Below, piece by piece: positions 5,754 through 56,969 of a stretch of 64,000 nucleotides of DNA. Each line of letters starts with the position of its first letter. The first letter of the stretch is position 1. Location: the IMG/VR virus record IMGVR_UViG_3300025133_009608, positions 186,001-250,000 of that record; one strand, given 5' to 3'. The notes beneath the pieces were generated by a model that worked only from the letters and a program-made list of their open reading frames with translations, had not been told where the DNA came from and did not search any database. The position numbers were made by a program, and so were the translations under genes.

Positions 5754-6255
5754 GTTACCTCTCTTTACTTACCTATAATGAATCGATCTTATTTGCGGAA
5801 GTTATACCGTCATAGTCCAATGTCAGTCGCCCCGCCCTCTCGGCCCATCGGGGCGACCCCAAAACCCCCCATACTTTTGTTCCAAAGCCCAAACATCAAA
5901 TAAAAGTTTCCAACCCCTATAAGAAAAACGAAATAACAGCCCTCACGGTTCAACAGGGCACTCCACCAGCCCAACCAAATCATTTATTCCCACAGATAAA
6001 TAGAAGTATCGATAAGAATATCCCAATAACAATACATTTATCCAACACATCAATACATAAACGAACACCAAATAAACATAAGCCGTACACTAATAAACGT
6101 ATAGCGCACAGTAAATGTATTAGCGCACAACAAATAAACAAACGTGCAACGCAATACATAAAAGAATAAAAGAAATAAATACATATATGTATTGCAACTA
6201 TATGGTTATATGGCTTGACGGCCCACCAGCGGCGTGTTACGCGCGGCGCGCACCA

Positions 6256-6387
6256 CATCTGCTTCAATTGCTCAGAATCAATGATTTTAAATAATGCTGC
6301 AGGGGAATGCTGCATCTGCTTCAATTGCTCAGAATCAATGATTTTAAATTCAGCACTCCCCATTGTTTAGAATCAATAATTTAAAAA
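6256..6387. repeat. 37-bp direct repeat x2 (6256-6292, 6313-6349) plus a degenerate third copy (6362-6387), with IHF-like sites
   Basis: CATCTGCTTCAATTGCTCAGAATCAATGATTTTAAAT; AATCAATAATTTA at 6371-6383 fits WATCAANNNNTTR. Confidence 0.85.
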
Positions 6388-6982: not shown

Positions 6983-7555
6983 TTAAAAAATATTTGTGAG
7001 GGACAACATTAATAATCCCTCATGTGTTTCTTTTATTTCCCTGGCCTTTCCTTCTCCCATTTCGACGGCGAGTTGCTTTTGCATGGTGCCGAGATGTTCA
7101 TATCGCCCCGACCAATTTGATGGATTATAATACATAATAGCATTTCCGTGGTCGGTTCCGATCAGGCTCGGAGGAGATGGGTCCGCATAAATTATTTTAT
7201 TAAAAGAATGGGCGGCCTTTGCCCTTGCTATTCCCCGGGCTCCCGCGCTCCATCCGACGAGCCGGATCGAGGATGCCTTGTCCCCATTCAGCGCCGCCTC
7301 TCCGGCTGCCATCATTCTGGCCCAACTGGCATCGGGTCCCGCGGCCACCACAACAATGGAGTTATCGGGACGAGACATTCCTTCCACCACTCCCCCCACA
7401 TATGATTGGCCTCCGCCATGGACTCCTGGATATACATATACAAGTAGCGGCCTTTCCGAAACATTTGATTTAAATACTAAACTTCCGTCTATTCTTTCTG
7501 ATCCTATTTTTAAAATAGTTTTATGTATCTGACTTATTTTTTCTAATCTATTCAC
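6983..7555 (-). CDS. Alpha/beta-hydrolase-like protein with N-terminal tag
   Basis: LVGWSAGARG nucleophile-elbow (GxSxG) motif. Confidence 0.55.
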   Translation of the reverse strand: MNRLEKISQIHKTILKIGSERIDGSLVFKSNVSERPLLVYVYPGVHGGGQSYVGGVVEGMSRPDNSIVVVAAGPDASWARMMAAGEAALNGDKASSIRLVGWSAGARGIARAKAAHSFNKIIYADPSPPSLIGTDHGNAIMYYNPSNWSGRYEHLGTMQKQLAVEMGEGKAREIKETHEGLLMLSLTNIF

Positions 7556-7594
7556 TTTCTGCTCCGTGGTAATTTTAATTATCTTTTAAAGATA

Positions 7595-8386
7595 TTATCC
7601 TGTTATCATCCAACCATTTATTCCATCGCATATTATTGTTATGCTTGCGTGATTTATATTCAAATCAAAGCTTGCCGCGCCATCTATTGTATCCGGAGAT
7701 GATGGATTTATTCTTATTCTATTTGTTCCGGCATTTCCGGTTGCATCTTTTATTATTAACTTCATTCCCGCGGATGTCCCCCTGGCCGGAAGGGCAATAT
7801 CTATCGTACTTATCGGGTTGCATCTTAATAAATAATCACTTTCCGTCGCGGAATAATTTGAAGAAATGTCCGTGATTGAAACCTTGACCCCTCCATCTAT
7901 CTTCATATTTCCCCCCAGATGGACGGGAGCCGTCGGGGTGCCTGTTCCTATGCCTATGTTGCCGGAAGTCCCCTCGAGGCGAATGTAGGTCGTATAATTG
8001 GCCTTTAGGTCCAGGGTCTCGGACGCCGCATCCCCCTTTATCTGCACGGAGGAGTCTCCCCAGAACAATCCCCTGTTATTATCACAATAAAAGTTGTTCC
8101 CCTGAACCCTAACCCCTCCGCCCTTGAAGGTGTAATAACTCCAAGACCCGGCAGCCCCGGGGACTGAGCCGGTGCCGAATCCAATTCCGCCATCAGTCTC
8201 AATTAAGAGCCTTTCCGTTCCGGCGGTTGAAAATCTTATTTTATCTTCATCTGGTGATTTCTCTACTTCTATTTTGGTGTCTGCATCCGCATCTTTTAGT
8301 TCAGATATACTTAAAGAGCTTTCATTTACATCATCTCCAGTTATTGAATCATCTAAAATTTGCCTTCCAGTAACTCTTGTTCCCAT
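7595..8386 (-). CDS. Virion structural, tail-fibre/baseplate-type protein
   Basis: DADADTKIEVE, GNIGIGTGTP and C-terminal LP...IIKD...GNAGTN..I...DTIDG motifs typical of phage fibre/connector proteins. Confidence 0.65.
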   Translation of the reverse strand: MGTRVTGRQILDDSITGDDVNESSLSISELKDADADTKIEVEKSPDEDKIRFSTAGTERLLIETDGGIGFGTGSVPGAAGSWSYYTFKGGGVRVQGNNFYCDNNRGLFWGDSSVQIKGDAASETLDLKANYTTYIRLEGTSGNIGIGTGTPTAPVHLGGNMKIDGGVKVSITDISSNYSATESDYLLRCNPISTIDIALPARGTSAGMKLIIKDATGNAGTNRIRINPSSPDTIDGAASFDLNINHASITIICDGINGWMITG

Positions 8387-8451
8387 TATATTGTTCCTAT
8401 TATTTTAATAATGATATTCATTGCTAAAGTCCACCATCCGTGGAGTTAGTA

Positions 8452-9054
8452 TCAGCTTCTTTTGGCAATAAGATTGAGGTTCCTTACTCCCTTCTGGCTC
8501 CATATACACCCGGAGGCCGCGTCCCATGGATAATACCAGTTGTACTCCATCCTCATGCTCGGCAAATATGGGCAAATTTCTATTCCAGAATATTCCGTGG
8601 CAACTTCTTTCCAGTCTATTGGGTTGTGGTGATCCCCTCTTTTTATAGGGACAGAGAAGTGCCAGTAAAAGGTTTTCAGGTCATCTTCATTCGCAATGCG
8701 CAATACAGATTCTGATAACTCTAGTTCGTAAATATAATTTATCTTTTCTCTATACTTAGAAAGCCCCGACTCTGCGAACTCCAGCCACTCTGTTCCGCAT
8801 CCGTACCAAAGGCCGTTTGGCTTCGCAAAGACCACTGGAGAGGAGGGCTGATCAGACTCTGAAATTCTGACTATCTCACTTCTAGATAAAATTATTTTAG
8901 AATACGAGGACAGGTCAACTCCGAACATCGAAGCTTCGCCCTCTTCCGAGGTGGATCCGGACTTGCGGATCGATATGAGTGGAGCCGCGGCCTGTATGGG
9001 TCCGGCTTCGATGACCGCCCTGTGCAGATTGGCTATTTTATTAAAACGACTCAT
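8452..9054 (-). CDS. Conserved viral hypothetical protein with N-terminal tag
   Basis: KPNGLW...IDW...YSGIEI...WDAASGCIW pattern. Confidence 0.65.
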   Translation of the reverse strand: MSRFNKIANLHRAVIEAGPIQAAAPLISIRKSGSTSEEGEASMFGVDLSSYSKIILSRSEIVRISESDQPSSPVVFAKPNGLWYGCGTEWLEFAESGLSKYREKINYIYELELSESVLRIANEDDLKTFYWHFSVPIKRGDHHNPIDWKEVATEYSGIEICPYLPSMRMEYNWYYPWDAASGCIWSQKGVRNLNLIAKRS

Positions 9055-9119
9055 AATATGTGTACCACTCCCCTTATTTTTATATTTGGGCCTCTTGGTC
9101 CATTTTATCCAATTATTCG

Positions 9120-9764
9120 TTATGAGTCAATCAGGTCATGCGGTCCCGGTTGTCTTCCGTAGGGTCCATCAAGCCATCGCCTGTCGCTCCGCGCAGGCAC
9201 TCTTTCCATTGCTTTAAGTTCTGCGTGCCAGTCTTCAACAACTGGCTGCGCAGGCACTCTTTCCATTGCTATATCAACCGGCTCGATACGTTCCTCGAAG
9301 CTGACCGGCTCAGAATGGAGTCTTTCGTATTCTCTTCTCCCATTGGCAAGTCCCCTATTCCATATGCTTAATAGCTCTGAGTCCCTCCTTAGTCTCGGCG
9401 AGGCTTTGGGTCGAACACCACCGGCAGCAGCCCTGAACGCATAAAGATAATGCCCAAGCTGGCGGCCCTCTAGTCCTATATGTGGATCGTATGGAAGCGC
9501 CGCCAGGGCTTGGGCCGAGTACATATGCCTCCCGCCCCTGGGACTGGGAGTTATGTTTGTCATATCGACTCGGTCCCAACCCTCCTCGTAAAGTTCTTGC
9601 TCCTCCCCGTATTCATCGTCCCGACGAGAGTCCTCATCCCACAGCCCATCACTCGAACCGAAATCTTTAGTTGCTTTCTTTATAACCGCGTCCAAGTAAT
9701 CCGCTTCTTTCACAAGCCCCCTCTCGTCTAAATGGGTAGCTAATTTTATTAGTTCTATGATCAT
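9120..9764 (-). CDS. Hypothetical protein with N-terminal helical tag (likely start MIIEL at 9764)
   Basis: GGAG RBS; LIKLATHLDERGLVKEADYLDAVIKKA; internal 23-bp duplication at 9191-9213 and 9248-9270. Confidence 0.65.
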   Translation of the reverse strand: MIIELIKLATHLDERGLVKEADYLDAVIKKATKDFGSSDGLWDEDSRRDDEYGEEQELYEEGWDRVDMTNITPSPRGGRHMYSAQALAALPYDPHIGLEGRQLGHYLYAFRAAAGGVRPKASPRLRRDSELLSIWNRGLANGRREYERLHSEPVSFEERIEPVDIAMERVPAQPVVEDWHAELKAMERVPARSDRRWLDGPYGRQPGPHDLIDS

Positions 9765-9828
9765 CTCGCCTTCTCCGCTTAATTGTGCTATCTGGTGACT
9801 TATATTTAATAATATATATTGCAATATA

Positions 9829-10545
9829 TTATTGAATATTAGCAGTATTCACTCGAGCTCTCGACTCTGCTCTGATCTTGGCAATGTTAAAGTCATGTTT
9901 CGCCTGAATATCTGCCCTTTTGGTAAGAGATGAGCCGTCTTCCCTGATCCAGGAGTAGTGGTAAAGAACCTCATGAATATAGTGAATGGGATATTTTTCG
10001 GAAATTCTCGTCCACATATCATAATCTTCGCTGATCCAATATTCTTCATTAAACCCACCGAGCTCTTCCATCACATCTCTTCTTATTGTAGTAGAGCAAG
10101 AGGCAACAAAATTTTGTCTCATCATCTTGTGCCAGTCGATCTTGATCGGACCTTTATAAAATGGCTTCATAAGTCTCTTTCGATCAACAAGAATCTGGTA
10201 GTTGCCACAGGTCATTCCTATCTCTGGATGCTTTTTAAATTCGTCCAGAGAGAGACGCAACTTGTCTGACCTCCAGAGATCATCAGCATCAAGCAGGGAG
10301 ATGTATGGAGCGTCCGAAGCTTTTATCGCTATGTTCCTCGAAGCCGCAGGCCCAAGGTTTTTATCATTTCTAATATAAGTGATGTTATTATATTTCTTAG
10401 TTATCTTTTCAACGTCTTCTTGGGAATGGTCATCAACCACAATGATATTTATCTTATTGTGGGATTGGCCCAAGGCGCTTTGGATCGCCTCATCTAAAAA
10501 TGTCCCGGGGTTGTAGGCCGGGATTATAACATCTACGTAATCCAT
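9829..10545 (-). CDS. Glycosyltransferase family 2
   Basis: VIIPAYN, VVDDHS, NLGPAASRN, LDADD, SEDYDMW. Confidence 0.9.
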   Translation of the reverse strand: MDYVDVIIPAYNPGTFLDEAIQSALGQSHNKINIIVVDDHSQEDVEKITKKYNNITYIRNDKNLGPAASRNIAIKASDAPYISLLDADDLWRSDKLRLSLDEFKKHPEIGMTCGNYQILVDRKRLMKPFYKGPIKIDWHKMMRQNFVASCSTTIRRDVMEELGGFNEEYWISEDYDMWTRISEKYPIHYIHEVLYHYSWIREDGSSLTKRADIQAKHDFNIAKIRAESRARVNTANIQ

Positions 10546-10625
10546 TTGGATATTCTACTGTGCCGCACGAAGCTTTATGCGACTAATCTGTTTCCACCCT
10601 GGAAAAGCGAACATTGTGCCCGGCA

Positions 10626-11864
10626 CTACGCTAACGCCTCCCGCTCTGATGAGTTCAATACCCTGTGGCCAGAGGGAACGGAATTCATCAGAGCTGGCGC
10701 TCTGGATAGTTCCTGATCCGCATACGCGGCCCAGCCCGGCTCCTTTTGGGCGCGGCCTCCCCAGTGCTTTCTTGCGTACAATTCATTGAACGCCTCAGCC
10801 CCATTAGCTCTCGCCCTACGCGCGCCATTGACTGCGCCCATACCGCCATACCACCTCAGAGCAACTTCCCACCAGTTCCCTAGCTGCCCATAGTACTGGC
10901 AGAGCTTGTATCTAGCGACATGGTCTTGATTATGAGGAGTATTCTCGGCTCCCGCCTCAAGTCCGGACTGAGCAGCCCAAGTCGCCCAGTTGGATTCAAG
11001 GATTTGATACCGCCCCCTTGCCATTGTACCGCGGTTGAGAGCATTATAGTCGCCGCTACTCTCCTGTCCTGCAACTGCTTCCATAAACAATTCGAGCTCG
11101 CCCGACGGGCAACTGTGTGATGCCGGGTTTTCGAGCGGGGCCGCGGGCTGAGCCGCTTGCTGGTGTCTGTCTGCCGCAAGTGCAGCGCCCTCCAGCAGGC
11201 CGAGTAGATACACTTTTCTAGTTACTCCGAATCTAGGAACGTTTCCGAAATACTCATTATCATTTAGCTCCGCAATAAGACCATTGACCAAGCTCAGCAC
11301 ATCGGCATCAACGCCTCCAAAGGTAATGCCGTCCTCCAATCTTTGAATTATCTCTTTGACCTCTCTCCTTGCAGGCTCCCAGGGCTTTTGACTTCCGTCG
11401 GAATTCCACAAGATATCTCCCGCAGCGGTAAGAGGGCCGGCCATTCTCCCGGGAGCTTCAGGTGCTGGTTCAGGTGCTGGTTCAGGTGCTGGTTCAGGTG
11501 CTGGCTCAGGTGCTGGCTCAGGGGCTGGCAGAGTATCATTGCCGGAAAGGGGGAAGTTATCCCACAGGTCCTGAACACTTTTTAATCTTTTATAAGCACG
11601 CGTTCCCTCTCCGTATGTTCTTCCGATCCCATTTCCGCTCTTTGTTCGAAGAACCTCAAATGTATCCGATTCATAGTAGTACCTGAAGGCATAAGGCTTA
11701 TGCCCGTTTCCATTAGATCTTGGCTGCCAGAAGTCTATGTAATCAGCACTTGCCATTCGGATAATTAAATCCGCCTCTAGCGTGTTACCACTTCTTCTTA
11801 AATGTTTTGCTAAAATATTAATTTTTCTTTTAATAATATAATTCATGATACTAATTCTGCCCAT
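10626..11864 (-). CDS. Tagged modular protein with C-terminal lysozyme-like/transglycosylase domain
   Basis: QESSGDYNALN...ARGRYQI...W...QD; PAPE linker; N-half paralogous to 19169..20404. Confidence 0.7.
   Translation of the reverse strand: MGRISIMNYIIKRKINILAKHLRRSGNTLEADLIIRMASADYIDFWQPRSNGNGHKPYAFRYYYESDTFEVLRTKSGNGIGRTYGEGTRAYKRLKSVQDLWDNFPLSGNDTLPAPEPAPEPAPEPAPEPAPEPAPEAPGRMAGPLTAAGDILWNSDGSQKPWEPARREVKEIIQRLEDGITFGGVDADVLSLVNGLIAELNDNEYFGNVPRFGVTRKVYLLGLLEGAALAADRHQQAAQPAAPLENPASHSCPSGELELFMEAVAGQESSGDYNALNRGTMARGRYQILESNWATWAAQSGLEAGAENTPHNQDHVARYKLCQYYGQLGNWWEVALRWYGGMGAVNGARRARANGAEAFNELYARKHWGGRAQKEPGWAAYADQELSRAPALMNSVPSGHRVLNSSEREALA
11457..11528. repeat. 12-bp tandem repeat x6 encoding a (PAPE)n linker
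   Basis: (T/C)TCAGGTGCTGG units. Confidence 0.9.
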
Positions 11865-11957
11865 TCTGCGCCCGCATGGATGATATGTTGCTATTATACT
11901 AGAATAATTAGCAGGGATTTTATTCTAAAATATAAATGAGCATAACCCTGATAATCA

Positions 11958-12710
11958 TTAATCTTCGATATCAAAAAATACGAACCCCCCAGGCCCCTCG
12001 CGGAGCCCAAGGTTGTGATAAGAAATATCACTTGCAAGGTCTAGATCTAAAAGAAGAAGATAGTCCTCTACGAGGCGATGCACCCAGTCTTTCGTCAGGC
12101 TGCCAGATAAATGTTCGTTTATCACTCCAACGCTAGAGGCGGCAATGTCGTCATTTAAAATAAAATTCACAACTTCGTTAGTAATCAGCAGGTCATCTAT
12201 ATACATTAATTGCGATATTTTCTCTGGAATTAATCCAAAATTACTATCTATCAAAAAATCTATTGATGAAAAAAGCTTACTAGACTCATCCTGGCTCAGT
12301 CCAATGGAGTATGTGGTTTCATTTTTTAACAATTCCATAAATCTATATTTGAACATGTATCCGGGAAAAGTCGAGCCACTTAGAGACCCCTCGGAATACA
12401 CTCTAAGCCCATTTCCTGCAATTCTTGGGAGTGCGATATTGTCGCCTGAGCGACAGACTCCCGGGGTCTTATGGGCACTTATTTTGAGGGCAATAGACCC
12501 AACTCTATATACGATCCCAGAGGTTCCCGAGCCAATCTCGGCCGGAGCCTCTGAGAATGAAGATAAGAATGAAATATTATCTATAATAAAACTTTTTGTA
12601 TTCCACCATACATTTCCAATCCACTCATGGCATTCGACCTCAGAGAGTGGCCTGAAAGACTGATTGATGCAAACGTTTTTTTCAAGCATTAGGCTGCCCT
12701 TGGGCTTCAA
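11958..12710 (-). CDS. Protein-kinase-like protein
   Basis: IGSGTSGIVY Gly-loop, ALK lysine, DISYHN catalytic loop, FFD. Confidence 0.6.
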   Translation of the reverse strand: MKPKGSLMLEKNVCINQSFRPLSEVECHEWIGNVWWNTKSFIIDNISFLSSFSEAPAEIGSGTSGIVYRVGSIALKISAHKTPGVCRSGDNIALPRIAGNGLRVYSEGSLSGSTFPGYMFKYRFMELLKNETTYSIGLSQDESSKLFSSIDFLIDSNFGLIPEKISQLMYIDDLLITNEVVNFILNDDIAASSVGVINEHLSGSLTKDWVHRLVEDYLLLLDLDLASDISYHNLGLREGPGGFVFFDIED

Positions 12711-13145
12711 TTAAATATTATCGAGAAGCGCTGCGACTAGTCTTTTTCGTGCTCGCGGCCTAATCTTGCTTTTTTGCGCAATAGAACTAAGCTTTTTTAA
12801 AGAATTTTTTCTTGATTCTCTGGCCTCTGCAATCGGCTGAAATATAGGGAGAGGCAAGTCGCCTGGAGGCCCCATTTTTACAAGCTCCTTCTCATGCCCA
12901 AGCGCCGGCTTGGTAACTGGGTTGCCACCCTCATCTAGCAGCCCTTCCGTGTATCGGTCGAGAAATTGTTCTTTATCCCACTCTACCGTTTCTTCTTCGT
13001 GGTTTATGGTTAAGAGCCCAACTATAGAGTTGAGCTTGACCCTTGGCTCTTCAGGCCCGTCAATTATATCTTTAATGACCTCAATCACAATATCTTCCTG
13101 ACCCCTATCGACAGTCAGTTCTGACCATAAATTCTCTTTGCCCAT
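12711..13145 (-). CDS. Hypothetical protein
   Basis: 144-aa ORF with GGAGG RBS. Confidence 0.6.
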   Translation of the reverse strand: MGKENLWSELTVDRGQEDIVIEVIKDIIDGPEEPRVKLNSIVGLLTINHEEETVEWDKEQFLDRYTEGLLDEGGNPVTKPALGHEKELVKMGPPGDLPLPIFQPIAEARESRKNSLKKLSSIAQKSKIRPRARKRLVAALLDNI

Positions 13146-13189
13146 CCGAAAGCCTCCGCGCTTACGTTATTATAATATATTACTATTTT

Positions 13190-13918
13190 TTAGAGAGAAT
13201 CTAGGATTTCAGATACATTATCTATATCGTCCTTAAGAACAAAGGTTACCCAAACTATATCTTCTGTAAGCTGGGGAACTATAAACTCATTTACATCAAC
13301 GGCCATTACCAGCCCTACCAGCCTACCCCTGCGATCAAATACCCCAGAGCCGCTTGAGCCGGGCCACGCATACGAATTCATTATCGCCACCGTATTGCCC
13401 TGCTCAAAGCCGGTGATGACTCCGTATACAAAAAGCCTGTCGTGAAATGCGGGATATCCAGTATAAAAAACTCGCTCTCCCAGCAGATCGTCCAAATCAA
13501 GCCGAGTCCTGCGGAGGGTTACTGGAGATGTTCCTTCCATTTCTGGTATCAAAATTGCTGCAAAATCGCTTTCAGCATTTCTATATATAACAGAACCAAC
13601 TGTGGAGTCGCTCCCTCTGCCGTTTATAAGAAAAATATCAGAACCAGCAACAACGTGAGCTGCAGTTATAACAATATGATGATCACCTATAGCAAAATAC
13701 GTCCCAGACCCATGCCCCCGGTTCTCCATATCAATAACTTTTACTGCAGCATCTCTGCTTTTTGACTCTGCTCTAGACAGAGACGCCTGTTCCGCAGAGG
13801 CCGAGCCCACATTTTCTGCCGTCACGCTCTCTGCGAGTACTGCCTCTGCTCCGCAAATATGGAGGTAAGAGGCTATCGCTATAATTACCCCTATCGCTAT
13901 ATATATAAAATTTTTCAC
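13190..13918 (-). CDS. Trypsin-like (S1) serine protease with N-terminal TM/signal
   Basis: TAAHV, D, PGSSGSG catalytic triad motifs; GTG start overlaps the upstream stop. Confidence 0.85.
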   Translation of the reverse strand: MKNFIYIAIGVIIAIASYLHICGAEAVLAESVTAENVGSASAEQASLSRAESKSRDAAVKVIDMENRGHGSGTYFAIGDHHIVITAAHVVAGSDIFLINGRGSDSTVGSVIYRNAESDFAAILIPEMEGTSPVTLRRTRLDLDDLLGERVFYTGYPAFHDRLFVYGVITGFEQGNTVAIMNSYAWPGSSGSGVFDRRGRLVGLVMAVDVNEFIVPQLTEDIVWVTFVLKDDIDNVSEILDSL

Positions 13919-14244
13919 TATCCCACTACCTTCGTGTACCAAATCATCGCTGCCATCAGAAATTGTACTACCGCGAAGATCGTAACCGCCTTTGTCTTAA
14001 ATAGGTTAAGGTCAGAAACATGCTCGCTAAGCTCCTTTAGTTGAGTTGGAGATAAAACTTCGTCAATTTTTGATTTCCATATCCTTAGCTCATCGACCCT
14101 GTCTTCTTTCGCCTTTAGCTCTACAATTTCTTCTTTTAATTCTTGAATCTGCTTGTTCAGCGCTGCCATTCCATCAGACAGGCTACTGAGCTCATTAAGA
14201 ACAAGCCTCGAGTATTCTCCCCAGCCATTTTTATCCTCTGGCAT
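13918..14244 (-). CDS. Coiled-coil protein with C-terminal TM helix
   Basis: Heptad pattern and hydrophobic C-terminus; AGGAGGAG RBS. Confidence 0.6.
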   Translation of the reverse strand: MPEDKNGWGEYSRLVLNELSSLSDGMAALNKQIQELKEEIVELKAKEDRVDELRIWKSKIDEVLSPTQLKELSEHVSDLNLFKTKAVTIFAVVQFLMAAMIWYTKVVG

Positions 14245-14315
14245 AGCTCCTCCTTTAAATATTAGACTGCCTTTGTGTATTATGTAGTTATCAATAATAG
14301 TTATTAAAAATTGTG

Positions 14316-14882
14316 TTATTGATTTCTAGTGTCTTCTATGAGCATTCTTATATATTCTGAGCCAAACCCTTTCAGGGAAGCGTTTAGTGTCATATCTTTT
14401 GTTATAAAAAAGAATGTCGGCCAGGACGTAAGCGGCCATGCTTCAGTTCCTATTAGGTCGCGACTTCCCGCAAGAACCGGGGCAGATGTTATTCCAAATC
14501 TATCCGCCCATTCTTTGCAGTCCTCTTCCGACGGGGGAAGCCCCTCGTCTGTTTCGATCAATATCGTTACATATACCAGATCACTATTTGCATCTTGGGT
14601 GCTCTGAACCTCTGCCGCTGCAGATTGGCATGGCGGACACCACTCTGCGCTAAAATCTAGTATTATAATCTTCCCAAAGTTGTCATAAAGGGAGAACAAA
14701 TCGCCATTTTGGTCTGCAAGCTCAACATTACAGGGGTGGTCCCCAATCTCCTGCGAGCAGCTGTCCCAAGTTATCGGAGAGGGGGGAGACGAGTCGCCAT
14801 TGTCCGATACAACTACGTTGCTCGGGCCGCAAGCCGTCATAAAAAAAATAAATGAAATAATAAATCTAAACATTAGTCGCAC
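14316..14882 (-). CDS. Thioredoxin-fold (TlpA/redoxin) lipoprotein
   Basis: DFSAEWCPPC, WPT; lipobox MTAC. Confidence 0.85.
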   Translation of the reverse strand: MRLMFRFIISFIFFMTACGPSNVVVSDNGDSSPPSPITWDSCSQEIGDHPCNVELADQNGDLFSLYDNFGKIIILDFSAEWCPPCQSAAAEVQSTQDANSDLVYVTILIETDEGLPPSEEDCKEWADRFGITSAPVLAGSRDLIGTEAWPLTSWPTFFFITKDMTLNASLKGFGSEYIRMLIEDTRNQ

Positions 14883-16477
14883 TCTCCTATTACTGCGTAG
14901 TTAATATCTATAGAGCTGCCGTCCGGCGGTGCGGAGCCGAATATAATACTGTTAATCGAGGAATCAAATATCCAGTCGGTAGAGGCAATTCCATCGACGG
15001 TAACCTCTATCGTTTCCTCTATTGGGGTCTTGGATAGGGCGAATATAATTCCGGCCAGAGAGTCCCTAGCCAGGCCCTCCATCGTTACGCTCCAATCATT
15101 TGCGCAAATTGACATTGATGTTCCGCCGAGATCCATCGTTACATCGTAGTATCCAGAGCCAAATTGTGCGCCGCCATTAGAGGTGCAGCCAGATGGATAG
15201 TCTCCGATTATAGAGTGTGCAACGATCATGCTTGATGATGTCTTCGTAGACAAAAGATGAGCGGAGTAATCCGATGAGGACATTGAAGAGCTAGACGCTG
15301 AGTGATCCGGCTCGTCCGATACATAAACTATAACCATTTTTGCGTCGGCCCTAAAAAATCCGGTCGAACTCCCCGTTGCGGCATCGCCCCCTGGAGACGT
15401 TGCAAGAAAAGACTCAAAAAGCCCCTTCTCCGTTGGGCTTCCTGAGTATCCAATTGTATCTACTTGGTCTTCAAAGTCAGATATGGGATCCGTTGATGCA
15501 GAGGTTATAATCGGCCCAACAAAGTCGGGGGAGTCCGTTGTTATAAGGGCCAGATGATAGTCCACCCCCGCCGCCGAGAATACGCTTATAAAGTTAGAAA
15601 AGTTATTCTTCAAGTTCGTCTGATTCGAACTCATTGAGCCGGAGTTATCCACAACAAATAATATGTCCACATTGACCAGGCCTTCTTGGGTAAAGCTATC
15701 AGTTATCCAATCTTTATACTCTCCAATGGCCTCATGTGCCGACTCCACTACCGGCGTTGCCGGATCATTGGAATCCACCTGGACATACGCCGAGTCACTG
15801 AGTCCATCTATTGGAATATAATCTATATCCAGAAAGATGTAATCTCCAGGAATAATAGTTATAGGAAGTGGGCCATATTCTCCGGTATAGTTTCCTAGAA
15901 AGAAATCATTCGGAATTGTTGCATAATATTGTAAATCGTAAATTATTAAATTAGAATTTCCAAGATTTCCTACTATAATTTCCAGCTGCTCTTCGCAGCC
16001 AAGATATACGCTTCCCATGTCATAATTTTCTGGGTCTATATATATCACCGGGGCATCGCCGGTTCCATCCAGAGTTATTTCGACTATTGGCTCGTCCATA
16101 TCGTTAGACGCAACGCTCAGGGTGTCAAGATTGGTCTCAAACGTCTGCGGAGAATATGTAATGATAACATCAAAAGAGCCTCCCGGCTCAATCTCGGCGG
16201 GCCCCAAGTAAGAAAAAGAAAACGTTGAAAAACTATTGCTTAGATACATATCATTAATGTCTAAGTTATCGTTTCCTATGTTTTTTATTGAGACTATGGC
16301 GTCTAAGGATTCGCTCCCCGCGCTCAAGGACCCGAAAGAATGCTCGGTCGGAGTGACTTCTATTTCTGGGGCAAGAATTCCCGGCTCAAGCTCTTCTACA
16401 ATTGGAGATATTTTATAATCACTACATCCGGCTATAGATGCGAGTAATAATATTTTATATAAAAACATCATAACCAA
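14873..16477 (-). CDS. Lipoprotein with Ig-like domains and a vWA domain
   Basis: Lipobox IAGC; two Ig-like repeats; DILFVVDNSGSM MIDAS; VSDEPD. Confidence 0.8.
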   Translation of the reverse strand: MVMMFLYKILLLASIAGCSDYKISPIVEELEPGILAPEIEVTPTEHSFGSLSAGSESLDAIVSIKNIGNDNLDINDMYLSNSFSTFSFSYLGPAEIEPGGSFDVIITYSPQTFETNLDTLSVASNDMDEPIVEITLDGTGDAPVIYIDPENYDMGSVYLGCEEQLEIIVGNLGNSNLIIYDLQYYATIPNDFFLGNYTGEYGPLPITIIPGDYIFLDIDYIPIDGLSDSAYVQVDSNDPATPVVESAHEAIGEYKDWITDSFTQEGLVNVDILFVVDNSGSMSSNQTNLKNNFSNFISVFSAAGVDYHLALITTDSPDFVGPIITSASTDPISDFEDQVDTIGYSGSPTEKGLFESFLATSPGGDAATGSSTGFFRADAKMVIVYVSDEPDHSASSSSMSSSDYSAHLLSTKTSSSMIVAHSIIGDYPSGCTSNGGAQFGSGYYDVTMDLGGTSMSICANDWSVTMEGLARDSLAGIIFALSKTPIEETIEVTVDGIASTDWIFDSSINSIIFGSAPPDGSSIDINYAVIGECD

Positions 16478-17336
16478 CCTCTATGTAGGATCCGTAATCT
16501 GGTGTAAAGTTAAAAATAACAGAATTAGATCCTTCTGAATACTCCCATCTATCCGTCTTTTCTCCATCTATATAGGCGACAATAGAGCTAATAACTGGGG
16601 CCGGATCAGACAGGGCTATGGAGTCGATTCGCTGCGTTAGGAACGACGACTCAGACAACCATACAGACCAGGCCTCTCCACATATATCTATTGCCGATTT
16701 TCCATATATATTTGCAATTTCTATATATTTATATCCGACATCATTTGAGAATGATGAAAAGCACAGGCTATTTTCAATTTGCGTGATGGAAACCACATCA
16801 TGTCGCGTCGACGGAGTTATGCTATACAGCCATTCGGAAAAAATACTTGCAGAGATTCCACTTTGCTCATCTTCATCCGATATTAAAAATAGTAACAAAT
16901 CAGACTCTTCCCTGATAAAGCCCGCTCCATCTTCAGATGTCAGAAAAGAATATGTAGCCATAAACCCGGCCTCTCCGTTCGCCGGAGGCAGCGTGCTCGG
17001 TGCTACTAACATGTCAATGGCGGATGAGCTGCTATCGTAAATTCCAGAAAATCCAAGATTCTGACCGTCTGCCGTTATAAAGCCAAAGTGGTACTCCGAG
17101 GTTAGCCCCTCTATATCGACTCGCAACTCTTCCATTCCAGTTCCGATACTATCAAAGTTGTCGGACATAGAGCCGGAAGTGTCAATGACCACAAGAATAT
17201 CTATTTTTCCAATCCTATCAATCTGCCTCACCGAGTCTACTACGACTCTGGTCTCTTTTCTGTCGGTCATGGCTATATCACTGCTGCATCCAGTCATAAG
17301 GATGAATAACGACAGTAATTTATTTACCAAGCTCAT
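16455..17336 (-). CDS. vWA-domain lipoprotein
   Basis: Lipobox MTGC; DILVVIDTSGSM; ISDEDEQS; paralogous to the C-half of the neighbouring gene. Confidence 0.8.
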   Translation of the reverse strand: MSLVNKLLSLFILMTGCSSDIAMTDRKETRVVVDSVRQIDRIGKIDILVVIDTSGSMSDNFDSIGTGMEELRVDIEGLTSEYHFGFITADGQNLGFSGIYDSSSSAIDMLVAPSTLPPANGEAGFMATYSFLTSEDGAGFIREESDLLLFLISDEDEQSGISASIFSEWLYSITPSTRHDVVSITQIENSLCFSSFSNDVGYKYIEIANIYGKSAIDICGEAWSVWLSESSFLTQRIDSIALSDPAPVISSIVAYIDGEKTDRWEYSEGSNSVIFNFTPDYGSYIEVGYDVFI

Positions 17337-17431
17337 TCTCCGCCTCCAAGCTGGGCTATCACAATCAGGATTACCAGTATATATAAAAATATTAACTGTT
17401 TTAAGCTGTGCGAAGAATTAGATGGCTGAAT

Positions 17432-18640
17432 TTATTCTATTTCATATTGCCCAACATCTATCACCACAAGGTCGCCTATATCTCCATGACTATTTTTTTC
17501 AATTCTTTGCATAATGTTATTTGCATGCAAGTCATTCCATAAGATTCCAGCGCTTTTTAGCTCCATTATCGCAGAAAACAAAGATCGAGTTTCTGGTGCA
17601 TATTCTTCAAAATATAAAAACCCCTCCTCTTGGCCATCGTATGACTCCCTTGGAGGGAAGACTCCGTCACGCGGCTTATTGTACTTTGGAAGAGGTCTTT
17701 TTGGAGATGAAAAATATTTATTTAATGATATTATGTAATGCTTTATAAAAATTTCCACCAAATCTTTGGACCCATAAAAATCTGAAAATGATGCCCGAAT
17801 ATTATTAGATATAAGTTCGGATTCAGAATGGACATCTTCTATAGATATCACTCCCTTGAATATATCAGACTCTAAATTCGTTGTCACAAATGATACCTTT
17901 GTTGCAAATTTCAAGAATGAAGCAATGCCATCCTGCTCTTCTTCTGTTTCGCTTGCGGACTTAACGACAGAAACCAGCGCATCGCCCATGGCTCTTATGA
18001 GGGCTTTGTGGATAAATTCTTCATCTTTCTTCTTATCGCTGGTCTTATCACTCCTTCCTCTTAAGAGGTTATTTATTTCCGCAGAATAGGGGCCTAGCTT
18101 TTCCATTATAATTACCGTTCCAAGGAGAGAGTGTGACCTTCCGGCTCTACTTTCAGAGCTGACCTTATTCATATCTATAATAGCTTTTATCTCTGGGAGG
18201 TGCCTTTTTGCATTTGCACTTATATTGGAGTTTTTTATCTTCCGCCAAACAGCGGGCTCCGGATCTGTTGTATCAACAATTTTTGCGATCGATGGGCCGT
18301 TTTGATATAACACTTCAAATATATCTCCATATTTTGACTTTATATGATGACCCTCTGTTGCGTTTACTCCGCCAATATATTTAATCGGAATTATGCCGTG
18401 CCCCCTTAGGCCTTCTTCCTTTGCTCTGATCGCCTCTTGGCGCCGCAATTGGGCCTGATAAATATCAGCTTCTCGCCTCGCCTCAGCTCGATCTCTTTGC
18501 TCTTGGGTTGGCTCTCTATAGGGAATTACACGAGTGGCGTCGATGCCAGCAGTCGCGATTAGCCAATATTTGTGAATTAACCCCGGGGTGAGAGCTTGCT
18601 TTAATAATTCTGATATTTTATTTATTCTAATTTTATTCAT
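17432..18640 (-). CDS. Protein-kinase-like protein with N-terminal tag
   Basis: IAKI, IIMEKL, DLHANNIM, VVIDVG. Confidence 0.7.
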   Translation of the reverse strand: MNKIRINKISELLKQALTPGLIHKYWLIATAGIDATRVIPYREPTQEQRDRAEARREADIYQAQLRRQEAIRAKEEGLRGHGIIPIKYIGGVNATEGHHIKSKYGDIFEVLYQNGPSIAKIVDTTDPEPAVWRKIKNSNISANAKRHLPEIKAIIDMNKVSSESRAGRSHSLLGTVIIMEKLGPYSAEINNLLRGRSDKTSDKKKDEEFIHKALIRAMGDALVSVVKSASETEEEQDGIASFLKFATKVSFVTTNLESDIFKGVISIEDVHSESELISNNIRASFSDFYGSKDLVEIFIKHYIISLNKYFSSPKRPLPKYNKPRDGVFPPRESYDGQEEGFLYFEEYAPETRSLFSAIMELKSAGILWNDLHANNIMQRIEKNSHGDIGDLVVIDVGQYEIE

Positions 18641-18682
18641 GATTTTGTAGATTATTTTACTAAAGGCCGCAACTATGTTCTC

Positions 18683-18696
18683 AACTATTAATAGTT
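18683..18696. promoter_or_regulatory. Palindromic putative late-promoter motif between divergent genes
   Basis: AACTATTAATAGTT is a perfect palindrome giving CTATTAAT on both strands. Confidence 0.45.
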
Positions 18697-18738
18697 AATA
18701 ATAAACTATAATAACCCATTAAATCCTGGAGAAAGAAA

Positions 18739-19152
18739 ATGGCAGTAACAATTCAAACGCTTAGAGATGCAGAACTTGACGCTACAATAAAAATAGTCTG
18801 TGATGGCGATGGAGATGGCGGAACGACGATAAATATATCTGACCTAAGTGGCGCAGAGGATGACGGAACTGACAGGGTCAGCATATCAAGAATGATGCTA
18901 ACGGCAAACGGCTCCGTATCGATAGAGTGGGATGCCGATAGTGGCGTGCTCGCGGCCCAGCTAACCTCGGGGCAGACCGATTGGACAATGACCCTGCCGA
19001 ATAATGCTGGGGCGGGAGTTACCGGAGATCTTATTGTTACCTCTGGAGATGCAATCACTCACTTTACGATGATCTTGTTCCTAAAGAAGGTTGCCGGGTT
19101 CGAGGGGTCTGCGCTATCATACAGAAAAGTTATGCCACCACGTCGGGCATAG
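18739..19152 (+). CDS. Hypothetical, probably virion structural protein
   Basis: GGAG RBS; G/T/D-rich beta-type composition. Confidence 0.6.
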   Translation: MAVTIQTLRDAELDATIKIVCDGDGDGGTTINISDLSGAEDDGTDRVSISRMMLTANGSVSIEWDADSGVLAAQLTSGQTDWTMTLPNNAGAGVTGDLIVTSGDAITHFTMILFLKKVAGFEGSALSYRKVMPPRRA

Positions 19153-19168
19153 TGCTTGCCTTCGCGCG

Positions 19169-20404
19169 CTATACGGTCTCTGATCCTCCGCCACCTCTGG
19201 GGCCTTGCAGGAACGCAAGGCCGTCTTGGCTTACAGAGTTGATCTTTACGTGAACGTGTGGGTCGGGGCGCCGAGTTTCGTCCCCAATGCGTGCGTCGAC
19301 AAGCCCGCGCGAAACCGCCTCTCTTGCAACCTCAAGTGCTCCTGGGGTATTTCTAAGATCAAATGCAATACCGAGGGCGTGATTTGATATTGGATTGCTC
19401 TCTAAGTATATCGCAGCACAACTTACTGCTTCAGATCTGTCTTTTCCTTCGAAGCAATCCGCTATAGCGGCAGCGCCGACGTCATCCCTATAGAGGTCAA
19501 TGAGATAGGCCCGTCCTGCGCCATTCTCATCTCCTCCGTTATTTATATAATTGTGATACATTACGCCCGCCTGGTGGGCCGATCCCCGAAAGGCGGATGT
19601 CATAACCAGCGCTGGCATGCCCATTGTTCTTGCGAGGTTTGCCATTATATCCGCCGCATTTTTTGCATCCTCACTCAGTCCGCTATAGTTGATTCCGGCT
19701 TTTTGCTCAATTGGCTCGATTACCGCTGAGCTTTCCGTCTTCAGTATGGCACCCTCCAGGTGGCTCAATAGGTAGTCGCGCCTCGTCATATTTAGCCTGC
19801 GAACGTTCCCGTAATACCCGCGCCGTCCGAGAGCATCAACCAGCCCTCTCGCAAGGCTGAGGTCTTCGTGGGCGGCTCCTCTTTCTCTCCCGAACAATGT
19901 CCCATCATCAAGTCTCTGAATTAGTTCCATGACCTCTCTTCGGACCCCTGGCCACGGCCTCTGTGTCCCGTCACTTTCCCATAGAACTTGCTCAGCAGCT
20001 GTTATCGCTGGAGCTGCAACGGCACCCACTGGGGATGTCTCCTGCGGGACATCCGACGTGACAGTGGGTGCCGTTGCGCTGCCTCTTGGGGTCTCTTGGG
20101 ATTGCTCCCCCACCGGGTATAGAGCCCACTTGTCTTCGAGGCCTTTTAATATTCTATATACGGAAGTTCGAGGCCCAAATATCTTCCCGATGCCATTCCC
20201 CTCTTTGGTTTGCAAGACTTCGAATTCATCTCTGGAGTAGTGATACCTAAAGGCATAAGGCTTATACCTGGTGCCGTCTTCCGATGGCTCCCAGAAGTCA
20301 ATATAAGTGACGCTCGCCAGGCGGATGACAAGGCCCGACTCTTCAACGGCCCCTGCGGCCTCTAGGTATTCTGCCAAAGCATTTATTTTTTCTTTATAAT
20401 TCAT
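19169..20404 (-). CDS. Tagged modular protein with C-terminal M15-like Zn peptidase domain
   Basis: TSAFR...Q, SNHALGIAFDL, PHVHV (H-x6-D...HxH); N-half paralogous to 10626..11864. Confidence 0.7.
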   Translation of the reverse strand: MNYKEKINALAEYLEAAGAVEESGLVIRLASVTYIDFWEPSEDGTRYKPYAFRYHYSRDEFEVLQTKEGNGIGKIFGPRTSVYRILKGLEDKWALYPVGEQSQETPRGSATAPTVTSDVPQETSPVGAVAAPAITAAEQVLWESDGTQRPWPGVRREVMELIQRLDDGTLFGRERGAAHEDLSLARGLVDALGRRGYYGNVRRLNMTRRDYLLSHLEGAILKTESSAVIEPIEQKAGINYSGLSEDAKNAADIMANLARTMGMPALVMTSAFRGSAHQAGVMYHNYINNGGDENGAGRAYLIDLYRDDVGAAAIADCFEGKDRSEAVSCAAIYLESNPISNHALGIAFDLRNTPGALEVAREAVSRGLVDARIGDETRRPDPHVHVKINSVSQDGLAFLQGPRGGGGSETV

Positions 20405-23769: not shown

Positions 23770-23770
23770 T

Positions 23771-32378: not shown

Positions 32379-33002
32379 TTAGCTCGGGAGGCACGAATCC
32401 CACGGCCTTCCCCCTTTTCCAAATACGTGCCCAGAATCCCTGCCGAGCTCTACCCAGCAATTATTTTCTTGCCGAGCCCAGTAGGGCGGAGAAGAAAGCC
32501 TTATACTGTAATAATAAGATGCATTTCCAATTTCGCCACCACTTTTTTCTCCGGAGCTTACAATCTGCCTTGCGGCCGCCCATTTCTCAGTATTTTTGTA
32601 TCTCATGATAAATTCAGAATACGTTGATGCAGAATAGCTATTAAGACATGAAAACTCATACGGAGAAGTAACTACTTCGTACATTGACTTCCCTGAATAT
32701 TCAGACCTGTTTTTTATAACTGTAAATACATTCTTCATAGCAACCACTCCTTGTGCTTGCGCCTCCGCCATTACTACTGATATAATTAAATCAATTGAAT
32801 TAGATGGCTCCGGGACGACAATAAGCTGCCCAGCCCATATCCTGCCCGGGGTTACCCCCGGGTTGGCAAGGCGCAGCTCTTCTTGTGACACTCCCATTCT
32901 TTCTGCTATCTGCCCAAATGTATCACCAGGTACAACAACATATGTTGACTCAGAGGCCATAATTATCTTTATGTAACTCTCTATTTTGTTTTTTCTTTTC
33001 AC
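32379..33002 (-). CDS. LysM plus SleB-like (Hydrolase_2) cell-wall hydrolase
   Basis: YVVVPGDTFGQIA LysM; MAEA...VIKNR...YEFSC...A.YYY...PYW...GHVF. Confidence 0.85.
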   Translation of the reverse strand: MKRKNKIESYIKIIMASESTYVVVPGDTFGQIAERMGVSQEELRLANPGVTPGRIWAGQLIVVPEPSNSIDLIISVVMAEAQAQGVVAMKNVFTVIKNRSEYSGKSMYEVVTSPYEFSCLNSYSASTYSEFIMRYKNTEKWAAARQIVSSGEKSGGEIGNASYYYSIRLSSPPYWARQENNCWVELGRDSGHVFGKGGRPWDSCLPS

Positions 33003-54851: not shown

Positions 54852-56969
54852 TTAAGCCAAATCAGATAGCATGGGCTCCGTGACGTCCCACTTCTCTAAA
54901 ATTTTATATAAATTAGCTATAGTTAAGCCTAAATGCTCTGCTGCTTTATTTTTATTACCATCAAACATCGACACGGCATCTTTTATATCCCTTACCGTTT
55001 TGTCCTGAAACTCTCTCCTGTATACGCTCAGTAGCTTCATTTCGAGATCCATCATATATCGATTTAAAGTTGACGAACTAATCCCAAGCTCCCTGGCCGT
55101 AGTGGTTGCAATTCCGCCATTATTAATAAGAGCTATATCAATTTTATTTCTAATCTCATCTGGAGTTAGCGATTTTGGCATATATCCTAAAATATCCACC
55201 CCGTAATATTCCAGCCGGGCGCTCAAGCCTCTATCATTTGTGCTTAGTGCCCGGGCCATTGCACTTTTATTGCCAAAATTTTCCTCCAGTATTCTTATGA
55301 ACTCCTCCCTACTGCTATCAAAATCTAAATCACGGTAGCTAATTCTACGCGCCTTTCCGCTTATTTCATATAGATCTATATTATTTCTTCTGACAACGGC
55401 TCTAATTCCACTCTCTGTTCTGTTTAGCTTTTTGGCAACAGCGTTTACGTCTCCATTTAGCTCATAAAGAGCAGCAACGACATCCTCCGCCGACACTGGC
55501 TGCTCATTATATAGAAGATCACTTTTATCAAATTTATATTTTTTCATCTTAGTGGCAAATGTGGCCGAGTGCATGTTGATCATCCGGGCCGCCTCGGCAA
55601 TTGAGTGGCTGGATTTTAGTGCATTTAAAATGCTACTCGATTCAGCGTCTTCTACTCTCTTTTTTATTTCATCAATATTTATCCCGAGCGTCCTCATCTC
55701 AATTCTAAGCGTTATTCCGGGCCTTTTTATTTTTCTTGATGTCTCTTTTACATTCCCATTGTTAGCAATCAGCGTGTCAATAATAATCTTCTTTCTCTCT
55801 TCGTCTTTTTTTGTATCCCTGTAATCTTCCGGGTTTAGCCCAAACTTATCCGCATAATGCGCTAAGCTCTGGTACTTCACTCCCATCAACTTGGCGGCAA
55901 GAACTCGGTCTCCATTTGCCTCTACTAAAAACTTTTCTATCTCTGTTATCTTTCTCCTCTCTTCTGCCGCTCGCTCTTTTTCTCTTTCCTCTTTGATGAT
56001 GTTTTTTGCATCAGAGATTTTACTACCAAAATCTGGATGTGCCTCTTCAAATATGTCGATGACTTTTCCCTTTAGCCACCAGGCCGCATCTATAACTTCC
56101 AAATCGGCAGCCTCCATGGAGTCCATATAATTTATGATTTCAAATTCTGGTTTAGACTTTATTTTGTCAGAATAGTAACTATTACTCGCACCAGAGGGAT
56201 ACGGAGAATGGGGATCGCTCTTCAGTATGTTGCACCTATTTCCGCCGCGAGCATGGTCTTTTCCATATTTTTCTTCAACATCTTTATATATCGAAACCTC
56301 AACTCCCAAGAATCGCCTTCTAAAGGACTCCTTGGACTCGCCATCGCTCCTCTCTATGGGCTCTAGGTGGACCATTTCTATCGGCTTATGGAGCGTAGTC
56401 CAGGCTGCGCCACATCGAATATGAGAATTGCCCTCGGTATAATCCGCTGACATCTGATTTGGACCGCCGCCCGCCGCGGGACCATCAGAATTGGGGGAAA
56501 AAATATCACTTAAGCGCATCTTTCTGCTCATAAATTTTTCTACCGCGCCCTTGTCGAATGGCTCGGTATATAATTTTTTTATGGTATCAAGCCCGGCGGA
56601 CGTTACATATAGACGGCCGATTTTGTGCTGTAAGAGCCGCGTGATGGGATTCTTTGCCTCTCCGACATACCAGTTGTATATCGGCAGGCCCGTTAGTGCG
56701 TCGACCACTTGTTTTCCGTCAACTTTGTTTTCTAATTTTAATACATATATGTAGTGAACGCCATCTTGCAGCGGCCCCATTGCTGAAACCTCCTGCCCCG
56801 GCCCTATCCCTAGGTGTGGGATCGGAACTCTGCCGCGCGCGCTCTTTGATATTAGATGACTATAGTCGCAGTTATATGGCATGAGCTCGCCGACGGCGGC
56901 AGCGGCGTCTTTCAGCCCCATGTCCTCCAATATGCCTCGTAATAGTGGGATTTTATTAAATCCTTTCAT
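54852..56969 (-). CDS. GIY-YIG nuclease with seven tandem Fis-type HTH domains and N-terminal tag
   Basis: YIYVLKLE..WYVGE...RLLQH..GAAWT.LHKP..YG...RGG; repeated L...GN...AA..LG.....L... Confidence 0.75.
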   Translation of the reverse strand: MKGFNKIPLLRGILEDMGLKDAAAAVGELMPYNCDYSHLISKSARGRVPIPHLGIGPGQEVSAMGPLQDGVHYIYVLKLENKVDGKQVVDALTGLPIYNWYVGEAKNPITRLLQHKIGRLYVTSAGLDTIKKLYTEPFDKGAVEKFMSRKMRLSDIFSPNSDGPAAGGGPNQMSADYTEGNSHIRCGAAWTTLHKPIEMVHLEPIERSDGESKESFRRRFLGVEVSIYKDVEEKYGKDHARGGNRCNILKSDPHSPYPSGASNSYYSDKIKSKPEFEIINYMDSMEAADLEVIDAAWWLKGKVIDIFEEAHPDFGSKISDAKNIIKEEREKERAAEERRKITEIEKFLVEANGDRVLAAKLMGVKYQSLAHYADKFGLNPEDYRDTKKDEERKKIIIDTLIANNGNVKETSRKIKRPGITLRIEMRTLGINIDEIKKRVEDAESSSILNALKSSHSIAEAARMINMHSATFATKMKKYKFDKSDLLYNEQPVSAEDVVAALYELNGDVNAVAKKLNRTESGIRAVVRRNNIDLYEISGKARRISYRDLDFDSSREEFIRILEENFGNKSAMARALSTNDRGLSARLEYYGVDILGYMPKSLTPDEIRNKIDIALINNGGIATTTARELGISSSTLNRYMMDLEMKLLSVYRREFQDKTVRDIKDAVSMFDGNKNKAAEHLGLTIANLYKILEKWDVTEPMLSDLA

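Follow-up and report, generated by a model that had tools for sequence, protein, structure and literature searches.

Encapsulin cargo-loading peptides, which are short, conserved and placed at a terminus, direct unrelated enzymes into an HK97-fold shell, and the C-terminal helix-turn-helix of the phage P22 scaffolding protein, a hairpin of ~30 residues, is enough to carry fused cargo into the procapsid. The capsid-targeting sequence (CTS) of phage T4 is an element of ~10 residues. The internal proteins of T-even phages are diverse and have only the CTS in common, by which those of T4 are directed to the prohead's scaffolding core (PMC3012670). Here we describe a conserved two-helix tag encoded by gene 9120-9764 of a 64,000-nucleotide stretch of viral DNA (the window) that comprises positions 186,001-250,000 of the 316,664-bp marine-metagenome contig IMGVR_UViG_3300025133_009608 (= Ga0208299_1000006). 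An initial annotation of the window had proposed that nine of its proteins, assigned to classes A and B, bear a common N-terminal helical tag that packages them into the phage head.

The window has a G+C content of 40-51%, and nearly all of its called genes lie on the minus strand. No match to the window DNA or to the tagged protein was found among 50,697 GenBank phage records. The closest cultured relative is Bacillus phage G, whose portal shares 34% identity with that encoded on this contig. This similarity is the sole link of the genome to the largest cluster of marine jumbo phages, which includes Bacillus phage G and has been described as 'largely uncharacterized' and as having 'as-yet unidentified infection strategies' (PMC9123017).

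A two-helix tag on unrelated proteins

The tag has the consensus MIKELIKLANHLDSKGLVKEADYLDSIIKK and is strongly conserved in 165 aligned copies, in which D13 is invariant (100%), L12, G16 and D25 are each present in 99%, E20 in 98% and A21 in 96%, and positions 29-32 are mostly K, K, A and A. A start methionine opens 79% of the tags. AlphaFold models of the tag in two contexts give a helix, a turn of 2-3 residues and a second helix at a predicted local distance difference test (pLDDT) score of about 80-88; the helices span residues 2-15 and 18-45 in the carrier protein P0036, and 66-82 and 86-103 in a ~180-residue head-module protein described below. The K-K-A-A stretch is read as the end of helix 2. 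Judged by its conservation and predicted fold, the conserved block of 30-32 residues is a self-contained, portable two-helix protein module. The body that follows it in the 9120-9764 product is rich in charged residues, proline and glycine and repeats an AMERVPA motif; no recognised domain was found in this body, and BLAST matches of the whole product to other tag proteins mostly stop within ~50 residues, the tag being what drives them.

A search with residues 1-40 of the 9120-9764 product against 5.8 billion proteins recovered 21 metagenomic proteins of 125-337 residues, one of which is the window's own protein. The 20 others carry a tag that is 79-97% identical on unrelated bodies; it usually stands at the very start, and several proteins bear it twice or three times. 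Among 1.84 billion cluster representatives, the tag profile matched 3,475 at E ≤ 1e-3 (814 at E ≤ 1e-10), and the tag of single-copy carriers nearly always occupies residues 1-33. The best-scoring 162 proteins hold 233 tags, 135 at the N-terminus, 25 at the C-terminus and 73 at internal positions, and more than one tag is present in 60 of the 162; P0036 (95 residues), P0063 (67 residues) and P0066 contain little beyond two or three linker-joined tags. Once their tags were masked, 249 unique carriers sorted into 165 body families, of which 138 have a single member. Carriers have a median length of 165-174 residues, and their bodies are slightly more acidic than the other proteins of these loci. 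Recognised domains are rare (LysM, Hydrolase_2, zinc ribbons and EF-hands in 193 carriers), and Pfam searches of 53 and 140 carriers gave no family in common. For the tag itself, NCBIfam returned nothing, a profile search of the PDB gave a best E of 1.2, and neither the ESM Atlas nor Foldseek, run on the models of P0036 and the ~180-residue protein, found a match; a literature search did not turn up its motif strings as a protein motif. A single Pfam match (E 1e-4) in the 140 carriers hinted at kinship with the T7 scaffold, was not reproduced against T7 gp9 (gene 9; best E 0.16) and was not used. The portable N-terminal helical tag on unrelated proteins that the initial annotation had described is real for this canonical form, and it is spread far more widely than the window shows.

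The positional data bear on the exact form in which packaging had been proposed, namely a strictly N-terminal, T4-like signal that is cut by the prohead protease after (K/R)xA in all nine proteins. The start methionine of 79% of the tags, a consensus ending in I-K-K-A/x-A and a protease-like domain encoded in the head module (see below) are in keeping with that model. However, the internal and C-terminal copies, together with the tandem ones, are incompatible with a signal restricted to N-termini, and eight of the nine listed sites fall short in the membership tests reported below. Cleavage likewise finds no support: nothing is conserved past position 32, no residue exceeds 22% at any of positions 33-46 in the 165 aligned copies, no cleavage site is conserved there, and K-K-A-A, which an internal diverged copy also has, reads as the end of helix 2. 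We regard the model in this form as most improbable.

Seven further copies of the tag are encoded in the same genome within a 20-kb stretch (contig 151-172 kb) that lies ~14 kb left of the window. Among six copies in this genome, an average of 51% of the codons for identical amino acids differ, and the DNA upstream of them is unrelated. Since the amino acids of the tag are kept while the codons differ, it is the protein that is under selection; the codon comparison and the unrelated upstream DNA rule out recent duplication, gene conversion and a DNA element or repeat. One could still propose that there is no biological signal here, and that the motif reflects chance, an N-terminal composition bias or a repeated DNA element. 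This proposal would account for the degenerate sites of both classes, A and B, in the window, which do not rise above chance. However, the canonical tag scores 60-67 bits with its profile and has thousands of independent carriers, near-saturated synonymous sites and unrelated flanking DNA, so that the proposal is excluded for the canonical tag of 9120-9764 and is hardly credible overall.

How widely is the tag distributed? A strict back-translated pattern found it in 14 IMG/VR contigs of 14-316 kb, and looser peptide patterns in 325 stretches. The carrier contigs examined have one portal type, with 306 related loci in IMG/VR, and one gene order. No true tag was found in the 50,697 GenBank phage records or in 185,579 bacterial and archaeal species (one genome each), in which latter the strict pattern had zero matches; three loose-pattern matches in cellular genomes are chance occurrences that miss the first helix and do not stand at a protein start. 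According to this census, the tag is confined to a group of uncultured marine jumbo phages with Bacillus phage G as closest cultured relative.

The head module and the probable partner of the tag

The gene order around the portal is conserved and begins with GroEL, RecA/UvsX, a primase, a 519-residue protein, a tag-bearing family and four genes, continues, often after another tag gene, with a gene for ~200 residues, the large terminase and the portal, and then encodes proteins of ~460-550, ~180, ~99, ~700-760, 60 and ~1100 residues. Additional tag genes stand shortly upstream of the terminase. In this genome the proteins of the head module include, besides the portal, ones of 457, 288, 700 and 1108 residues; no scaffold was recognised. 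Searches of Pfam, NCBIfam and the ESM Atlas gave no function for the tag-bearing family beside the 519-residue gene. The N-terminal part of the ~1100-residue protein (1108 residues) matches the head-maturation-protease family phrog_18299 (E 1.5e-11) and gp19 of phage G. The ~180-residue protein, two genes past the portal and encoded in this genome at L082:13110-13973 (288 residues), has a diverged tag at residues 70-101 that also bears a K-K-A-A stretch. The tag profile matches this protein with an hhalign probability of 92.6% (E 4.5e-7, 32 columns). Across 19 conserved families of the neighbourhood, with 17 families of the same neighbourhood as controls, only the true tag family gives a better match, and the next control is two orders weaker and covers 13 columns. 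In its AlphaFold model, the hairpin supplies helices 1 and 2 of a five-helix domain that follows a disordered N-terminal third.

Two further families were noted. The tag profile aligns over 30 columns (E 0.0028) with the C-terminal end of the family of L082:19846-20346 (~185 residues), which follows the 1108-residue protein and may, on this match, hold another diverged copy of the tag in the head module. In addition, a conserved domain of ~140 residues (STRYSPDRVGVQ, DPYTNKVYDYNEGF) is encoded at about position 10001 of L025-L045 (for example L030:10001-10837) and is followed in most relatives by one to three tags. The same domain is encoded in this genome at L082:45-590, where a degenerate tag is followed by a separate gene with a weak-tag start.

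Cell-wall hydrolases recur among the tag carriers, either as LysM with Hydrolase_2 or as a domain resembling cell-wall peptidases. In a related phage, the product of L016:3936-4823, a homolog of the window protein 32379-33002 (E 4e-15), has a diverged tag at its start, two LysM matches and Hydrolase_2. The C-terminal catalytic domain of the window protein 19169-20404 has an SxHxxGxAxD motif, as in cell-wall peptidases, and is homologous (E 2e-14) to P0044, which bears canonical tags at residues 1-33 and 453-484.

A central question is what the tag binds. Because tags stay near-identical on unrelated, fast-changing bodies despite codon drift, the tag probably docks its proteins to one partner in common, and its confinement to a single phage group suggests that the phage encodes this partner. 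The tag would then be a docking or address module that gathers varied accessory proteins at one place. The assembling head is the leading candidate for that place because a diverged copy lies between the portal and the gene with the protease-like domain, tag genes neighbour the packaging genes, and the cargo repeatedly includes cell-wall hydrolases. The internal proteins of T-even phages provide a functional precedent. We favour docking and loading of cargo at the head tentatively, as a plausible reading that is somewhat less likely than not. The hairpin would bind a component of head assembly, for which the conserved ~180-residue protein with its diverged hairpin is the best candidate, and cargo such as the cell-wall hydrolases would travel with the virion; nothing points to removal of the tag by proteolysis. 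The tag would work in the manner of the T4 CTS or of the P22 scaffold helix-turn-helix, although it belongs to neither family. Loading into the head and injection are candidate functions of the tag. In its fullest form, the hypothesis is that in phage-G-like marine jumbo phages the hairpin pairs with the diverged hairpin of the head module, thousands of proteins are brought into the procapsid and multi-tag proteins act as internal linkers. The cargo would comprise cell-wall hydrolases and numerous uncharacterised small proteins, and the hairpin would be a novel packaging tag defined by its sequence; this more detailed picture is possible though doubtful.

Several observations weigh against a head destination. 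The C-terminal, internal and multiple tags would be equally in keeping with a general interaction domain and with a packaging signal, the majority of tag genes sit in small-gene arrays a long way from the head genes, and the 165 copies have no conserved cleavage motif after the tag. The ~180-residue protein had no match in the PDB, in Pfam or with Foldseek, and the phage group is uncultured. Moreover, in one family (3 of the 249 carriers) the tag directly precedes a hydrophobic lipoprotein-like signal and a Cys-rich domain, and such a protein would therefore be membrane-bound rather than head-bound.

An alternative hypothesis is that tags pair with one another into four-helix bundles, and that tagged proteins and multi-tag linker proteins build a network or compartment in the infected cell rather than fill the head. 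Natural proteins made of little more than linked tags (P0036, P0063 and P0066) would suit such a role, as would the higher acidity of the carrier bodies. The AlphaFold model of P0036 has four helices, with a predicted template modelling score of 0.57 and low confidence in the linker between the tags, and its best fold matches are four-helix-bundle ferritins, which are not significant. However, packing of the helices is weakly supported (Foldseek E > 0.7, no pLDDT > 90), and dimerisation modules of paralogs usually diverge against cross-pairing whereas the tags are near-identical. We consider a tag-built compartment unlikely, and pairing itself would be compatible with head loading if the diverged hairpin of the head-module protein were the pairing partner.

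A second alternative is take-over of the host, in which the tag would bind one abundant host machine (RNA polymerase, ribosome, chaperone or protease) and so deliver or protect small effectors. The mostly small size of the carriers, their dense accessory-type gene arrays and the near-invariance of the tag, which suits a conserved host target, would agree with this. However, cellular genomes hold no tag-like sequence that would hint at mimicry, a promoter-like element that precedes many small genes (see below) was not found before tag genes, and a host machine would be an ill-suited destination for proteins that attack the cell wall, outside the cytoplasm. A host machine as partner is, in our view, decidedly unlikely.

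Docking to a single partner, be it the head or another structure, would have consequences beyond this locus. By its sequence, the tag marks a large and otherwise unannotatable accessory set (3,475 clusters) and implies one site of action for it, and the identity of the partner would give a location to thousands of hypothetical proteins together. With the procapsid as partner, the tag would offer a compact natural means of loading large capsids with foreign proteins; with any other partner, it would still disclose a new principle by which jumbo-phage infection is organised. In either case the tag is a practical marker by which contigs of this phage group can be recognised.

Sites and genes of the window

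Which of the nine proposed sites belong to the tag family? The tag was compared with the 69 window proteins by hhalign profile-profile alignment, with the six-frame translation by a hidden Markov model (HMM), and with 42,984 positions by an ungapped BLOSUM profile scan; membership was taken as at least 40 bits against an HMM made from copies outside the window. All the peptides quoted in the initial annotation are present at the minus-strand starts given for them. The starts at 7555 and 33002 are GTG codons, those at 9764, 11846 and 56969 are internal ATGs within longer open reading frames (ORFs), and 63249 lies inside a protein. The proposal that one tag is common to these sites stands for 9764 and does not extend to the other eight, which are not demonstrable copies. 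With the HMM of outside copies, the tag of 9120-9764 (window position 9755) scores 63-66 bits, and no other position of the six-frame translation exceeds 5 bits, even when the search is iterated with 37 unique copies from related contigs; 11825, 20389, 56957, 63249 and every class B start remain below 40 bits. The hhalign comparison gives E 4.7e-18 for 9120-9764, and its runners-up, the products of 10626-11846, 60679-63999 and 19169-20404, are at chance level for 69 comparisons (Table 1). In the BLOSUM scan, 11828, 20392 and 63255 rank third, fourth and ninth, all three come behind an unrelated stretch within the long ORF 34644-37169, and 56954 is outside the top 25. An HMM of the five quoted class A peptides, the check originally suggested, finds only its training sequences, and leave-one-out runs never recover the omitted peptide. 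From these comparisons, 9764 is a certain member, the 11846, 20404 and 63249 sites are remote relatives of the tag at best, and 56969 is unsupported.

Table 1 Coordinates of the tag, of the proposed tag sites and of the hhalign runners-up in the window
Feature	Coordinates	Strand	Remarks
Canonical tag	9669..9764	-	First 32 residues of the product; two predicted helices with a short turn (xxG) between them
Tag-bearing gene	9120..9764	-	214 residues; GGAG-type ribosome-binding site 5' of the ATG at 9764
Class A site	11751..11825	-	In SLT transglycosylase gene 10626-11846; <3 bits with the tag HMM; remote relative possible, undemonstrated
Class A site	20315..20389	-	In gene 19169-20404, a paralog of 10626-11846; membership undemonstrated
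Internal class A site	63181..63249	-	In PcfJ-domain protein; membership undemonstrated
Class A site	56883..56957	-	In 705-residue HTH-matching protein; no HMM or hhalign signal; unsupported
Class B N-terminus	7502..7555	-	GTG start; common motif not established
Class B N-terminus	9004..9054	-	Common motif not established
Class B N-terminus	18593..18640	-	Common motif not established
Class B N-terminus	32955..33002	-	LysM + Hydrolase_2 cell-wall hydrolase; no tag at this site
hhalign runner-up	10626-11846		E 0.0095, probability 4%
hhalign runner-up	60679-63999		E 0.028, residues 251-267
hhalign runner-up	19169-20404		E 0.15 alone; 0.016 as two-sequence profile

Class B had been presented as a second class of tag. 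A pattern for it, written post hoc, matches 7 of the 69 N-termini where 0.9-1.7 are expected from shuffled N-termini; because the pattern was set after the data had been seen and local N-termini are rich in K, N and I, this enrichment is at most suggestive, and the class is hence not established. The bodies behind the tag are unrelated, as had been stated, among carriers of the canonical tag, and this does not hold for 10626-11846 and 19169-20404, which are paralogous over ~225 N-terminal residues. The class A site of 10626-11846 coincides with the first helices of this common region. The two paralogs have two conserved blocks, a Pro/Ala-rich linker and swapped catalytic ends (SLT in one, the SxHxxGxAxD-motif domain in the other). 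No relatives of the N-terminal domain of 19169-20404 were found among the 5.8 billion proteins or in IMG/VR, so that bridging the pair to the tag via homologs failed. Among the enzyme labels of the initial annotation, Pfam bears out SLT (10626-11864), LysM with Hydrolase_2 (32379-33002) and PcfJ (60679-63999), and gives only helix-turn-helix (HTH) matches, and no enzyme domain, for 54852-56969; the hydrolase, kinase and peptidase labels come from sequence motifs, and the nuclease and ART labels are putative. The Pfam matches of the 705-residue product of 54852-56969 (minus strand) are spread along its C-terminal half and comprise Fis-type HTH_8 (two stretches, E 1.7e-21, the strongest), HTH_30, HTH_28, HTH_29 and HTH_1.

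A promoter-like element of ~30 nt, TTC[CG]ATAAATAAGATCGATT[CT]ATTATAG, recurs in the window, mostly 35-75 nt and once 142 nt upstream of minus-strand genes. Its core, AGATCGAT, lies at window positions 87, 415, 677, 1364, 1809, 2806, 2873, 3639, 3941, 5418 and 5789, with no gene seen for the copy at 87, and also at positions 2313, 3623 and 4380 of L002, where there are two more on the other strand. With TTCCAT, 17 nt and TATAGG, the element has a sigma-70-like look. A promoter common to the tag genes was rejected, as the element precedes other genes and no tag gene.

Further observations concern other minus-strand genes of the window. In the 807-residue ORF 50212-52635, a group 1 glycosyltransferase (best PHROG stretch 97-300) is joined to a tubulin/FtsZ GTPase domain (418-583) that weakly matches the PhuZ family, an unusual fusion unless a gene boundary was missed. 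Gene 22129-23787 has a DUF2345-like segment below the Pfam cut-off, 13190-13942 encodes a trypsin-like protease with a hydrophobic N-terminus, and 7595-8386 has short matches to tail-fibre families; from such matches, the window may include some virion or envelope-acting genes. The predicted 127-residue product of 5980-6363 starts with a near-exact internal duplication, in which FKIIDSEQLKQM occurs twice within 35 residues.

Comparison with known address tags

The spacing L-A-x-x-L-x-x-x-G-x-x-x-E-A of the tag resembles, by eye, one helix pair of a TPR/Sel1-like hairpin. However, no TPR or Sel1 model of Pfam matches any of 193 tag proteins, and the tag is single rather than part of a stacked repeat array. 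Encapsulin cargo-loading peptides have no sequence relation to the tag and are short, extended, mostly C-terminal and encoded in cellular operons, whereas the tag is a predicted helical hairpin on phage genes. The coat-binding hairpin of the P22 scaffold is similar to the tag in the predicted shape of the latter, both being two-helix elements of ~30 residues, and a diverged tag in a head-module protein adds to this likeness. A PDB sequence search with the tag profile showed no similarity to the P22 hairpin, which, unlike the tag, is not spread over many genes.

A parallel in organisation is the CTS of the T4 internal proteins IPI, IPII and IPIII, which is likewise a short conserved N-terminal element on varied and numerous accessory cargo. 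The two have no sequence relation. The T4 signal is short and lies at the extreme N-terminus, whereas the tag is predicted to fold as a hairpin of ~30 residues within its 30-32-residue conserved block, occurs also at internal, C-terminal and tandem positions, and is followed by no conserved protease site. The head module described here resembles that of Bacillus phage G rather than that of T4, and packaging by the tag is a hypothesis. The principle of one conserved address on many cargoes is therefore known from T4, while by sequence comparison the tag module itself is unrelated to the T4 signal and absent from the domain libraries searched, and its spread far exceeds that of any phage packaging tag so far described.

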